Part shown: piece by piece, positions 10,727-18,179 of the stretch
How the letters are laid out: the number at the start of each line of letters is the position of its first letter
Position numbering within the stretch: position 1 is the first letter of the stretch
NCBI RefSeq assembly: GCF_041956535.1
Contig: NW_027192199.1
Location: forward strand, 310,001 to 374,000
DNA from: Calcarisporiella thermophila CBS 279.70
Taxonomy: Eukaryota > Fungi > Calcarisporiellomycota
Direction: 5' to 3'
Length of the DNA stretch: 64,000 bases
Made by a program: the position numbers and the translations under genes
Notes under the pieces: generated by a model
The model's database searches: none
Told to the model about the DNA's origin: nothing
What the model saw: the letters and a program-made list of their open reading frames with translations, nothing else

Positions 10727-11228
10727 TTAGCTGAATCCGCCGCAATTTTGTCGGTTCTCGCCGCAAAGCTGCAGGCTCATCATGTTGATGCCCCGTGAGC
10801 TCGAATATGCTCCAGCTCCAGGGAAAAACCAGTGTTCGCCCTTTTGACAGTTGGGCTTGCTATAAAGGACGAGCTTGTAATTGCCAACGATTTCTGCAGC
10901 TTTAACCGTGACAGGTTGTTGCACATTGGCGCAACCCTCTTGATCGGACGTAACTAAAAAGAAAATGAACAAATTTGAATCCATCTTCGAATACTGGAGA
11001 TATCACTAGGGAAGTAGATCCGTTCAATAACCCATCGAACATACCTGTGGCGACCGCTTTTTGCATGGTGATATCATTGAAAAGCGATATTCTAACTTTG
11101 TTTGCAGTTTGTTTAATGGGCTTCTGGGCAGGCTGCTGAGCAAGCGCTTTTTGGGCTCCTTTGCGCTGAGCGGCCACTTCGTGGATAAGTGCAATGCAAC
11201 AAATAAATAGCAAAATCGAGAAACGCAT
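10727..11228 (-). CDS. Small secreted Cys-containing protein, beta/gamma-crystallin-like (killer-toxin/I36-like) pattern; intron 10954-11044
   Basis: Signal peptide MRFSILLFICCIALIHEVAA; an in-phase GT-AG intron; mature GCANVQQPVTVKAAEIVGNYKLVLYSKPNCQKG...SLQLC...C. Confidence 0.6.
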
Positions 11229-12214
11229 TAATGATTTAAGGAACGGCAAAAGGAAAAGCACAAAAAGGAGGAGGAAAATAAAGGAATGATGCTTATTGCA
11301 ATTGAGAAAAGAAAAAAGAAAAATATTAGATATACAAAGTAAGCTTCGTGCTAATCTCATTAATCCTCCTCCAGTGATTGTGGAAATTAACCCAATCCGG
11401 TTTTATGAACTGTAGCTTGTAAATTATTGGCAGATTCTTGATAATTCAAACTATCTGTATAAGGATGATAAAGATCACATTCATTAGAAAAAAGCACATT
11501 TATATGCAATTGTGAACAGCCAAGGCGCACACATATTCAGCCATATAAGTGAATGAAGTATTGGCCCTCTCCCCATTCCCTTAATTCTCTTCTTATATTC
11601 CCCATGGCATATACAGGAGGGCTTATGGAAATTAAAAGATGGAAGCGTGGAGTAAAATTATGTGTCAAAGTCGAATAGCCTTGAAGTATAGCGTAGAGAC
11701 GTTTCGAAATAATAGGGTGTACGGAAATTTTCTAAATATAAGAATATGAGGCATTAAAAACGTACATTAGACTTGAAAAAGGTGACATAAGAGTCGCTTC
11801 CTAATGACCTATAATTAAATCAACTTTTCAATTTCCTTCTATATTTGGAATAGTCCCATGATTTCACAATTCCACTTCCTAGATTAAATGGAAATTCGAT
11901 AGACTAAGTTTAAAACTCTACACTGGTTCAAGGCAAAAATACGGCATCGCCAATGAAAGTCGCAAGAATTTCCTAGAGACTCTCCTGACAGCTTTCGCTC
12001 AAGCGAATTCTTACACGAGGTTAGTTGAAGTGTCCAATATCCAATAGCCAATAAACCTTTCGATCTACAATTGCTAGCTTATTGAGAATATTATTGTTTA
12101 TTGGTAAAGAGATAAAGAAGCTTAACACAGCTTTAAAAAAAAATACCCATAAGAAATCTATTGGATTTTCTACATAATCATTATTTATTCGTTTTATTGT
12201 ATACTAACTTTTCA

Positions 12215-13426
12215 TTACGCGGAGTCTCGTTTGTGGTGACCCTTGCTCTTGACTTTCACTGAGTTGTCGAAGTCTCCGGTGGCCTTTGTGTTGGCATTGC
12301 GGTTCTCGACAGTTGAGCCTCCAGATTCAGCATTGGAGTTCAACAGGGAAAGGTGGTCAATGAGGTCCAAGTTGTTCAGTGCGCCATCAGCAATACCACG
12401 TCTGCATGGGCCACCATGGCGCTTGTGGTGGTGGTGTCCACCTTGGAAGATGGAGTTGTCGCAGTCACCAGTGGCGACCGTGTTTGCATTGCGGTTCTCC
12501 GCAACATTACCGCCCGAGTTGGCGTTGGAGTCCAGTAGAGAAATGTGGTCGAGGATGTCGGCATTGTTGAGCGAGCCATCGAGCAAACCACGTCTGCATG
12601 GGCCCTTATTCCACTTCTTCCAGTGGTGGTGGTGATGTCCGCCGCTCTGGAAGATGGAGTTGTCGCAGTCGCCCGTGGCCTTGGTGTTGGCATTGCGGTT
12701 CTCCGCAACATTACCGCCCGAGTTGGCGTTGGAGTCTAGGAGGGAGATATGGTCAGCGACGTCGGCATTGTTGAGGGTACCATCGAGCAGGCCACGCTTG
12801 TAGTGGTGGTGGTGGCCCTTGTCCTTAACTTTGACCGAATTGTCGAAGTCACCCGAAGCCTTGGTGTTGGCATTGCGGTTCTCGACGGTCGAGCCACCAG
12901 AGTTGGCATTGGAGTTCAGGAGGGACAGGTGGTCAATGATGTCGGCATTGTTGAGGGAGCCATCCAACAAGCCACGCTTGTGGTGGCCCTTGTCCTTAAC
13001 TTTGACCGAGTTGTCGAAGTCACCCGAAGCCTTGGTGTTGGCATTACGGTTCTCGACAGTTGAGCCTCCAGAATTAGCATTGGAGTTCAACAGTGAAAGG
13101 TGGTCAATGAGGTCCAAGTTGTTCAGTGCGCCATCAGCAATACCACGCCTGCATGGGCCGCCGCCATTGCGTTTCCAGTGGTGGTGGTGATGACGTCCAT
13201 CGGACTGGAAAATGGAGTTGTCGCAGTCACCAGTGGCCTTGGTGTTGGCATTGCGATTCTCTGCAACGTTGCCGCCCGAATTCACGTTCGAGTTCAGGGC
13301 GCTGACGTGGTCGATAATGTCAGCATTATTAAGGGAACCGTCCAATAGACCACGTTTTATAGGGGTTGCCTGAACAAAGCTGACAAATGCGAGGGCAACG
13401 GCCAAGCTGATCAAAGTTGTCTTCAT
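12215..13426 (-). CDS. Secreted Kex2-processed tandem-repeat precursor (KEP) with six roughly 55-60 aa N/S/G-rich His-tailed peptides
   Basis: Intronless 403-aa ORF. Signal peptide, TPIKR, then six repeats G(LL/IA)DG(S/A/T)LNN..DH.S.LxSNxxSGG..ENRNANTxA(T/S)GD(C/F)DNS..H(2-5), each bounded by KR/RR/KK. Confidence 0.92.
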   Translation of the reverse strand: MKTTLISLAVALAFVSFVQATPIKRGLLDGSLNNADIIDHVSALNSNVNSGGNVAENRNANTKATGDCDNSIFQSDGRHHHHHWKRNGGGPCRRGIADGALNNLDLIDHLSLLNSNANSGGSTVENRNANTKASGDFDNSVKVKDKGHHKRGLLDGSLNNADIIDHLSLLNSNANSGGSTVENRNANTKASGDFDNSVKVKDKGHHHHYKRGLLDGTLNNADVADHISLLDSNANSGGNVAENRNANTKATGDCDNSIFQSGGHHHHHWKKWNKGPCRRGLLDGSLNNADILDHISLLDSNANSGGNVAENRNANTVATGDCDNSIFQGGHHHHKRHGGPCRRGIADGALNNLDLIDHLSLLNSNAESGGSTVENRNANTKATGDFDNSVKVKSKGHHKRDSA

Positions 13427-15828
13427 GGTTGAATAGGTGTTCAGTAGATAAGGTAGTATGGTATAATATATAAAAGATGTGTACAGTTATATGGCAATTA
13501 GATGGGAGAGCTCGAAAAGAGTGCAAGCGACTTTCTGTGAATACGCTTTTTTATAAAAGAGAGATTGTTGGATGATGTGAAAAATGTTGCAGGGTCTGCG
13601 TTTTTTATATTCAAGAATCGGTCCATTACGGGATATTTTAATATTCATTAATCCGGCGTATTTTTAATTACTCTCTTTGTTGTCAGGCTATTTTTCTCCT
13701 AGAAAAATAGCCACCGATTTGGTTCTCTCCCCCCTGCCCTTCTGGAAGTAGAAAAATGGCCGCGCCAAATATGACCGTTATTTTTTTCATTGAACGTTGC
13801 TCGGTTGACATCGAAACATATGTTAAATGGGATCTAGAGCAGGGGGAGCGCAAATTTTAAGTATTCCCAAATATGGATCACTATGGAGAAAGGGATCGAC
13901 GTTTACCATATTCAAGGAAATGGATAGACGCTGGAAAAAAAAAACTCGGTTATAAAAATCTTGATAGAGATATTCGTTGTTGTCATGATGAGCCCAAACT
14001 GTCTGTCTCGGAGATATTAAAAAAGGTGAAGAGGGTTATCGTGGAAGTTAGGGGAGATATACTATCATTTGAGCTGCTTGTCTTTTTTCACTTCTATCGA
14101 TCGTATTTTTTTATTTACATGGGTTTAGAGGTAAATACTTTATTGTTCCGATACACTCTGTGGCACAACTCCTGCCAGAGATCGGTGTCAAATCTTTTGC
14201 CTATCCAGAGTTATTTCAAGTGCGAAGACATTCGGTTTGAATTTCCTATGTATTTAAACCGACAATGGTATAATCGATAGCTAGGGCATAGTTAACCACA
14301 ACCGACCCACTGTATATTAGAGTTATAGATCCCAAACCTGATTAGACTAAAGAAATACGAAAACATTGAGGCCCATTGCAAACTTTAACTGAATTTTCAA
14401 ACAAACTTTAACACAATAGTCGATCTTATTTCATTGGTTACTTGATTAAAATGGTGAAGAGATAATATTGGAAAAGTACAGCCTCATGTGTGGAAGAGCT
14501 GGGCATTTGGAAACATGCGTTGTAAGAGTGTGGAGAAGATATGTCGTAATTTAGAATGTCATCGAAGCCATGCTCAGTAGCAGTAGTTGCCAAGAGCAGC
14601 TAGAAGTTAATAGTAGAAACAGTATGTCTGATGGAATTGAAACATACAAAGTTACGCGCAAGGGAGAGTTTGGAATGGCCTAGCTGCTGATGAGAGTAGA
14701 ATGGTGGAAGTCAAGATAAGCCAGCACCAGGAGGTTGAAATGCCATGAAAAAATATTCTATTCCGTGCGGAATGGTATCAATGGACTTCATATGGTTAAA
14801 AACTTGCAAAGAAATTGTTATGAAAAACTTCTTATGCTATATTGTTCTCTATTGGGTGCGCTATGTGGTTGTTATTTCTTTTTGCACTATATGTGATGTC
14901 AAAATAGAGATGCGGATCAAGGTATTTATTGCCTTGTCATTTATTTCTCACTAAACCAAAAGTTATCTTTTGGGCATGTTATCCGAGATAAGAAAAAGAT
15001 AGAAAAAACTTGGACTCCAGTGATTTATTGCGACGTGTGGAATCGAATATACATATAAGTGGTGATTCAGAGGCTGATGGCAAAACTGAGCGTTTGGGAT
15101 ATGATTTTCGGAAATTTTGGATATTAGCCTTTGTTATCGTGGCGATATTCATTCCATGACATACAAAGAGTCATCAATTATGATGCCCAGATATTTCTTG
15201 GGGATACACAATCACAGCCTACGACCAATACGGAGTTGTGCATGAAATCATAAGTTAATGGATCAATTAAATCGAGCACCATATTTCAAGCCTTGTCACT
15301 AAAATCACTAGTATTCAGAATGGTGATAAGTGCATATCTCTGCTACACTACATATTTCCGCAAAAGCACCTTAGATCATATCAAAAATGAGTAGGTCGAT
15401 TTTTACTTATTATAGTTGAAATATTGAAATATTTCAATTAGTTCGCCCACTAAGAGATGGATTAGCGCTTTATGTCGATATGAGCTAAGAATAATTTACT
15501 TAGTTAAATACAATCCAGGAGCATTAGTCAACTTTTCAATATGGTTCTTATATTGGCCAGCACAACTAACTCGAGGCCAGGGCTATCTGGTTGAGTTTTA
15601 ATGACTAATCATAGAAACCATTAGAAAATCTAGGAAAAAAAAATTGCTCAATATAGCTACTTGGAGTAAATAGGATAGCGCAAAGCAAAGTGAGAAGCAT
15701 AAATTATAACACCAGTAGAATGTTCAATTATGAATATTTGGCTCATTGAGCCAGATTTTCATGTTTCATGCCACTCATCTAAAGCTTTGTAAGGATCGTT
15801 CATCAAATTTCAACCCAATCATTTGCTC

Positions 15829-18179
<2,351 letters not shown>

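Follow-up and report, generated by a model that had tools for sequence, protein, structure and literature searches.

The precursor gene and its paralogs

The subject of this paper is a repeat-protein gene in a stretch of 64,000 nucleotides from Calcarisporiella thermophila CBS 279.70 (contig NW_027192199.1, positions 310,001 to 374,000 of the forward strand), which is called the window throughout and which comes from the strain whose genome was published (PMC11393059). The gene lies on the reverse strand and encodes a precursor with a signal peptide, a short pro-piece and six tandem units; it is probably, and we hold this with good confidence, a Kex2-processed repeat protein (KEP) whose units contain the core of a bacterial-type exported peptide. 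KEPs are common in fungi, and the function and the origin of their peptides are nearly all unknown. For the KEP described here the origin of the peptide appears traceable, as bacteria export the same peptide as a single unit, by two routes and nearly unchanged (84% identity, with synonymous sites saturated). The parts of the gene are as follows (aa, amino acids).

12215..13426 (-): whole coding sequence, 403 codons plus a TAA stop at 12215-12217, ATG start, intronless
13367..13426 (-): signal peptide, aa 1-20, ending ..VQA; a hydrophobic N-terminus by inspection
13352..13366 (-): pro-piece TPIKR, ending with the first KR site; read from the translation
13145..13351 (-): unit 1, kind A, aa 26-94; core, HHHHHW tail, internal KR and spacer NGGGPC-RR at 13145-13168
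12974..13144 (-): unit 2, kind B, aa 95-151; HH tail, then KR
12794..12973 (-): unit 3, kind B, aa 152-211; HHHHY tail, then KR
12590..12793 (-): unit 4, kind A, aa 212-279; tail HHHHHWKKWNKGPC-RR
12398..12589 (-): unit 5, kind A, aa 280-343; HHHH tail, internal KR and spacer HGGPC-RR at 12398-12418
12218..12397 (-): unit 6, kind B, aa 344-400; end HH-KR, followed by the C-terminal DSA (to aa 403)

The open reading frame (ORF) at 12215-13426 (-) contains no internal stop and requires no intron over its 403 aa, and residues 2-18, the sole confident helix in the AlphaFold2 model, overlap the predicted signal peptide. The units, arranged in the order A-B-B-A-A-B, start with G[LI][LA]DG[STA]LNN and terminate in KR or RR. 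Kind B ends in ..GDFDNSVKVK.KGHH, and kind A contains two Cys residues (..GDCDNSIFQ..H4-5..GPCRR), one in the core and one in a short spacer (NGGGPC, KGPC or HGGPC) before RR; in unit 1, the spacer Cys pairs in number with the core Cys. From unit 1 to unit 6, the His runs are HHHHH, HH, HHHH, HHHHH, HHHH and HH. Pro is absent from the cores and occurs in the units only in the GPC spacers, and the composition of the units is dominated by N (13.9%), G (10.9%), S (9.4%), D (8.9%) and H (7.2%). The initial annotation of this DNA had described a signal peptide, a KR propeptide and six repeat units that are rich in N, S, G and D, free of proline in the core and furnished with two to five His each, and all of these were recovered in the ORF; its unit length of 55-60 aa has to be corrected to 57-69 aa, and its description of the units as near-identical was overstated, as their pairwise protein identity is 70-96%. 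Identity at the DNA level is only 66-93%, and Tandem Repeats Finder reports periods of 171 and 204 nt. The ratio of nonsynonymous to synonymous substitution rates (dN/dS) between units is 0.07-0.20 and synonymous sites are largely saturated, and the units of the window gene are therefore old copies that have been kept by purifying selection.

A six-frame search of the 28.2-Mb assembly revealed about 20 paralogous loci, the window gene included, and unit-profile scoring counted at least 90 units in the family, 76 of them complete, with 1 to 12 units per gene. KR or RR stands directly before 68 of the 76 complete units and Gly is the first residue in 71, while every paralog with a readable start has a signal peptide followed by a pro-piece of 3-8 aa that ends in KR or RR. 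Two proteins in the databases (P0001 and P0003) are letter-for-letter the ORFs of two of these loci (L007 and L002) in the same assembly. The number of Cys residues is even in 67 of 70 unit-plus-spacer blocks, and core Cys co-occurs with spacer Cys in the fungal units (Fisher p = 1.7e-9). Among 70 fungal units, 22 contain a run of 2-8 His residues; such runs occur in 11 of 18 genes, and seven paralogous genes have none. Two interrupted loci (L021, G000:C12:~179-183k; L026, G000:C8:~964-967k) contain long spacers between units that are rich in His, Asp and Trp, such as HHHHH and DDWDDD.

The proprotein-convertase P domain of kexin (PF01483) scored above the cut-off at six loci of the genome. 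The kexin/furin P-domain loci are:

G000:C5:1110032-1112179: kexin/furin P domain
G000:C7:757755-759762: kexin/furin P domain
G000:C17:258385-258645: kexin/furin P domain
G000:C19:558104-558436: kexin/furin P domain

Six is a large kexin set for a fungus, found alongside about 20 polyprotein genes; two pairs of these loci are close neighbours on opposite strands, and one locus contains two in-frame stops. The sequence features by which a KEP is recognized were found, namely an N-terminal secretion signal, at least three similar units (six in the window gene) separated by KR or RR, and kexin genes in the same genome; the Kex2-type polyprotein layout proposed in the initial annotation holds across the family.

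As a class, KEPs were surveyed in two studies (PMC6339444; PMC7329392), neither of which mentions Calcarisporiella or a bacterial origin. The window family resembles the fungal KEPs described so far, including the alpha-factor precursors, the Ustilago Rep1 repellents and Candida Ece1, in that a signal peptide and a short pro-piece precede tandem units with KR or RR between them and further domains are lacking, and its multigene expansion fits the high KEP counts given for Mucoromycota (PMC6339444; PMC7329392). However, the units of 51-69 aa differ from the commonest class in these surveys, which is 9-24 aa (PMC6339444; PMC7329392); they often carry His-run tails and Cys-tethered mini-spacers, and clear homologs of them are exported by bacteria, one unit at a time. 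The repellents and candidalysin are hydrophobic, whereas the window peptides are acidic and hydrophilic. In the case of dikaritin-type peptides that are made on the ribosome and modified after translation (RiPPs), which are ustiloxin-like KEPs, the cores are far shorter than the window units, and a search of the genome for the UstYa/DUF3328 family (PF11807) gave no match, nor did the control genomes; a RiPP reading gains no support from this search.

According to this layout, the precursor would enter the secretory pathway and be cut by signal peptidase after aa 20; a Golgi kexin would cut after the pro-piece KR and after each KR or RR between units, and the basic residues would be trimmed by a Kex1-type carboxypeptidase. 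Six free peptides of about 55-66 aa would result, each starting with Gly, acidic and rich in Asn in the core and closing with a cluster of His at the C-terminus. In units 1 and 5, the spacer of 5-6 aa probably stays bound to the main peptide by one disulfide, and in unit 4, which lacks the internal KR, the two Cys residues would close a loop within one chain. The tail of unit 4 has an internal KK instead of KR, and this counts against the scheme insofar as the processing of this unit is less clear.

Bacterial homologs and probable horizontal transfer

An exhaustive HMMER search against 1.84 billion representative proteins yielded, besides the fungal paralogs, about 18 small single-unit proteins; in these, the start of the unit coincides exactly with a site of export cleavage, of either the Sec type or the double-glycine type. 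In Sec-type proteins the unit's first Gly directly follows ..AHA, ..ARA or ..ASA, and in three others (P0022, P0023 and P0025) it directly follows a double-glycine leader (..GG). The leader model TIGR01847 scored 13.2 bits on P0022, below its cut-off of 15.7. The gene of P0025 is located between an HlyD gene and a gene for a Peptidase_C39 ATP-binding cassette (ABC) exporter, and the contig of P0022 encodes an ATP synthase gamma subunit that is 84-92% identical to those of filamentous cyanobacteria (among them Coleofasciculus, Allocoleopsis and Lyngbya). The named bacterial holders are Streptomyces, Actinokineospora, 'Nocardia' NRRL S-836, Phytomonospora and Streptodolium, and the other fungal holders are Orbilia oligospora and Dactylella cylindrospora, whose single units follow KKR or RR, and Crucibulum laeve. 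The unit core is, on this comparison, homologous to the mature part of about 51 aa of small exported proteins of mycelial actinomycetes and filamentous cyanobacteria, and is no invention of the fungus. What appears to be new is that the unit of a KEP family is also the mature part of such bacterial proteins.

In a scan of one genome per species, seven loci came to light, distributed over six genomes of Streptomyces and one of Actinokineospora, and each of the Streptomyces loci encodes a precursor of about 77 aa with a mature part of 51 aa. A search with a profile of these precursors retrieved 84 small proteins, mostly from dozens of Streptomyces species, with E-values down to 1e-32; all are annotated as hypothetical or secreted, and none has a Pfam domain. 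These unnamed proteins (for example a 77-aa protein at L033 5923-6156, and P0024, P0026 and P0038) share the Gly-starting module of about 51 aa with the fungal units; they differ in having one unit per gene, release by signal peptidase, a lack of His tails (none of the 76 bacterial units has a His run) and a near lack of Cys and of dibasic sites. Among the four Streptomyces gene contexts examined, no conserved neighbour, including any of immunity-like type, was found; the neighbours are unrelated, and two of the four genes lie near chromosome ends. In Streptomyces the peptide gene is a rare accessory gene and no core developmental gene.

Several single records extend this picture. A family member (P0062) is annotated on a plasmid of Streptomyces sp. 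QTS52, which would offer a route for mobility. A bacterial-type protein of 100 aa from a Logan assembly (P0109) has a Sec signal and two units joined by ..GVSKR directly before VIDG.., a dibasic two-unit form outside the fungi. Three metagenomic proteins of 153-158 aa (P0014, P0103 and P0107) have a Sec signal, then the unit, and then a C-terminal part of about 85 aa with no Pfam match. A 97-aa protein in a record of the grass Stipagrostis hirtigluma (P0029) contains a single unit, and its neighbours in the tree are metagenomic bacterial-type forms; contamination or a further transfer is possible.

The closest match across kingdoms is that between the last unit of a 12-unit paralog (L003) and the mature peptide of Streptomyces sp. 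NBC_00133, in which 43 of 51 residues are identical (84%). No gap interrupts the alignment between the first Gly and the terminal GQHQ, after which the reading frame ends directly in both. The corresponding DNA is 70% identical, with 33% identity at third codon positions and a GC content at these positions (GC3) of 0.49 in the fungus versus 0.92 in the bacterium; such low third-position identity indicates that the transfer is old, that codon usage has adapted and that the protein has been strongly constrained. Unit 3 of the window gene shares 31 of 47 residues (66%) with the mature peptide of Streptomyces sp. Je 1-79.

In the tail-less paralogs the unit is 51 aa long and is followed by KR, and hence a kexin cut together with trimming of the basic residues would recreate the mature ends of the bacterial peptides. 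These matching ends are the strongest argument available here that the fungal precursor would be cut at the predicted sites and that the unit would act as a free peptide. It is at the same Gly that signal peptidase or a double-glycine peptidase cuts the bacterial homologs, and the bacterial forms thereby provide independent evidence both for the cut sites of the fungal precursor and for a unit that works as a free peptide. It could also be argued that the precursor is secreted or wall-bound without cleavage, with its six units stacked in one solenoid-like domain, for kexin cleavage is predicted from sequence and the AlphaFold2 model of the full precursor puts short strands in every unit. This explanation is very improbable: the full-length model has a predicted local distance difference test score (pLDDT) of 37.5 with no confident residue outside the signal peptide, in bacteria the homologs occur as single units and are released at that same Gly, and dibasic boundaries that recur so regularly across paralogs of 1 to 12 units are hard to explain without cleavage.

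In a maximum-likelihood tree of 87 units, fungal and bacterial sequences are interleaved: units of L003 group with Streptomyces NBC_00133, and units of L017, L018 and L010 group with the cyanobacterial-type P0025. Horizontal transfer most likely moved the family between bacteria and fungi. The transfer from bacteria to the fungus is the favoured direction and would fit a family that occurs in two phyla of bacteria and is exported there by two routes. It is also the more usual direction of transfer. Several results weigh against this history. The unit is present in 3 of 151 sampled Streptomyces genomes, and members are scarce in that genus and most numerous in the fungus; in the approximately unbiased (AU) test, a single Calcarisporiella clade was not rejected (p = 0.38, 48 columns), and adding the Orbilia and Dactylella units gave p = 0.26 for one fungal clade. 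With 48 columns, such non-rejection means that multiple transfers are not claimed here, and neither is the number of events or their direction. After the transfer, the peptide family was most likely multiplied into about 20 polyprotein genes within Calcarisporiella, and the His tails and Cys-tethered spacers are fungal additions. The family would thereby offer a clear example of a short-peptide gene rebuilt into a eukaryotic polyprotein.

The mode of export and the distribution of the bacterial genes also bear on an explanation in which the peptides are a secreted antagonistic cocktail, bacteriocin-like or antifungal, taken from bacteria and amplified for competition in hot, crowded substrates. 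Three cyanobacterial-type homologs have double-glycine leaders, and the one flanked by HlyD and C39 ABC exporter genes has the arrangement of a classic bacteriocin export cassette; the distribution is patchy and of accessory type, the gene contexts vary and in some cases lie near the end of a chromosome, and a plasmid carries one copy. Secreted weapons are, moreover, a common kind of cross-kingdom transfer. However, the likeness to class II bacteriocin-type export (double-glycine leader, C39 ABC exporter) is limited to P0022, P0023 and P0025, with an adjoining exporter at P0025, whereas the window gene uses a eukaryotic signal peptide and kexin. The peptides are not known to have antimicrobial activity; they are anionic, hydrophilic and not amphipathic, unlike most membrane-active peptides; the Streptomyces contexts lack a conserved immunity-like neighbour; and strong purifying selection with such high cross-kingdom identity is unlike an arms race. 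An antagonistic cocktail is rather unlikely.

Peptide properties and possible functions

The conserved pattern of the unit consists of G-x-L-D-G-S-L-N-N, a stretch with hydrophobic residues, LN[ST]N[IV]NS, a variable turn and ENxNANT[KR]AxG. The six predicted products of the window gene are 55-66 aa long, with a net charge of -2 to -6 (His not counted), 3-6 His and 8-10 Asn each and a grand average of hydropathy (GRAVY) of -0.5 to -0.9. Hydrophobic moments were calculated for helical and beta periodicity, and none of 87 non-identical units exceeded shuffled sequences. The idea of an amphipathic helix was dropped on account of these moments.

Profiles of named families do not account for the unit. 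Pfam and NCBIfam gave only sub-threshold chance matches on the precursor, the paralogs and the bacterial homologs, a profile search of the PDB with the unit gave no match at E <= 10, and the core motifs were not found in the literature; the remark in the initial annotation that no named family is recognizable for this unit is borne out. In the ESM Atlas, the nearest clusters were unnamed actinomycete 'secreted proteins' (0.88), rodlin (0.83) and chaplin (0.80), all below the lead threshold, and a query with the mature peptide gave no usable named match.

Known surface proteins were considered as candidates for the identity of the unit. The rodlins and chaplins of Streptomyces, which form a surface amyloid layer, are likewise small secreted proteins of mycelial actinomycetes, but the window unit is hydrophilic and belongs to neither family. 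For the comparison with rodlin (PF25848), 39 sequences were assembled, two flanked by chaplin genes in a single Streptomyces genome and the rest from 18 further genomes, and the hhalign probability against 77 bacterial units was 4.9% over 13 columns, by which rodlin was rejected. A C-terminal motif of rodlin, ..SH[IV]L..IPVLSGN (L051 728-1138 (+)), resembles unit positions 10-22 over these 13 columns, at the same probability. Chaplin (PF03777, ChpA-C) was rejected with no Pfam match at E <= 10 and an hhalign probability of 0.4%. Hydrophobin (PF01185, PF06766) was rejected too, the units having 0 or 2 Cys instead of the eight-Cys pattern and no Pfam match, and the curlin repeat had no Pfam match in the window precursor. 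Membership in the class of Rep1-type repellents and other surface-active peptides was rejected on the GRAVY values, the net charges and the moments, which lie within those of shuffles.

Matches of class I hydrophobin (PF01185) above the cut-off were found elsewhere in the genome:

G000:C25:89122-89352 (+): class I hydrophobin match, 80 bits
G000:C18:374809-375051 (-): class I hydrophobin match, 30 bits
G000:C18:373349-373579 (-): class I hydrophobin match, 25 bits

Hydrophobins are usually described as proteins of the Dikarya, and this genome belongs to the Mucoromycota. They have also been reported outside the Dikarya (survey preprint 10.1101/2022.08.19.504535). The premise of the initial annotation that the surface system of this fungus is independent of hydrophobins is weakened by the three matches and by this report, and its idea of a hydrophobin-like surface coat fares no better, the predicted peptides being hydrophilic and acidic and showing no amphipathicity beyond that of shuffles.

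That idea takes the released units for functional amyloids of the beta-arch type which, instead of hydrophobins, would coat aerial hyphae or spores, with assembly triggered through pH or metal by the His tails; it nonetheless draws on several properties of the family. Two conserved NxNxN stretches, LN[ST]N[IVA]NS and ENxNANT, flank a variable turn (SGG, DPQ or NPQ) in a strand-turn-strand pattern, the extreme conservation of sequence across kingdoms fits a tight self-complementary structure, units are present at a very high dose (90 or more), the named holders are filamentous organisms in nearly every case, and the full-length AlphaFold2 model draws the units as strands where the single-unit model draws a helix, both at low confidence. 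On the other hand, the peptides are unlike hydrophobins, chaplins and repellents in polarity, charge and beta or helical amphipathicity, they have no similarity to rodlin or chaplin and no curlin match in Pfam, and the genome has its own class I hydrophobin matches; the Streptomyces gene is a rare accessory gene and not a core developmental one, and the His tails are missing from the bacterial members. An amyloid coat of this kind is judged unlikely. A prediction of a four-copy complex of unit 3 gave scores of 0.00 and 0.02 and is no evidence for or against assembly.

The His runs could also suggest that metal handling is the main role, with the peptides acting as secreted chelators or buffers of Zn, Ni or Cu and the core as a mere carrier. 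This would agree with the presence of runs of 2-8 His in a good part of the units and genes and with the long His/Asp/Trp spacers of some paralogs, but seven paralogous genes and all 76 bacterial units are free of His runs while their core is still under strong constraint, and metal handling as the main role is improbable. The absence of the tails from all bacterial units indicates that they are not part of the core function of the module; the core has a function of its own, which the tails at most modulate, and they would serve as a pH or metal handle specific to the fungus.

The strong constraint, the polar and acidic make-up and the missing amphipathicity argue against lytic or surfactant action, and we do not think that the peptides are membrane-lytic or surfactants. 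The live options are that they self-assemble, that they bind a conserved ligand or ion, or that they antagonize through a receptor. As a tentative proposal, the site of action of the free peptides may be extracellular, where they would associate with one another or bind a conserved ligand or ion. Unit positions 20-31 (e.g., window 12881-12916 (-) in unit 3) read N-x-N-x-N-S-[DG]-x-x-x-x-E; by inspection, this 1-3-5-12 spacing may be that of a calcium loop of EF-hand-like type in which Asn replaces Asp.

It is possible, though in our judgement doubtful, that the 'GLLDG...ENxNANT' peptide of about 51 aa is an undescribed extracellular module of filamentous actinomycetes, filamentous cyanobacteria and a few filamentous fungi that spread horizontally and whose action consists in precise self-assembly or in binding to a conserved ligand or ion outside the cell. 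From a single bacterial gene, about 20 kexin-processed polyproteins would in that case have been made in Calcarisporiella, restoring the mature ends of the bacterial peptide and gaining His-run switches and spacers tethered by disulfides, and this, if true, would be the first bacterial exported peptide domesticated as a fungal KEP family. AlphaFold2 gave no confident fold either for one unit (79-row alignment, pLDDT 55, a weak helix over residues 4-26) or for the full precursor described above. Very strong constraint on an acidic, Asn-rich peptide of 51 aa with no predicted fold merits structural study, and a Streptomyces strain with its single-copy gene provides a tractable system to find the function of a peptide that is made in about 90 copies by a thermophilic fungus.

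Flanking features of the window gene

Around the precursor gene, several motifs were recognized as patterns only:

13547..13555 (-): TATA-like tataaaaaa, about 120 nt upstream of the ATG
~13464-13472 (-): second TATA-like motif, tatatatta
12184..12198 (-): two aataaa motifs, polyadenylation-signal-like, just downstream of the stop

An ORF with a signal-like stretch is located at 10902-11360 (-), about 850 bp downstream of the precursor, and the GC content of 16001-18000 is 0.257, compared with a window mean of 0.435.

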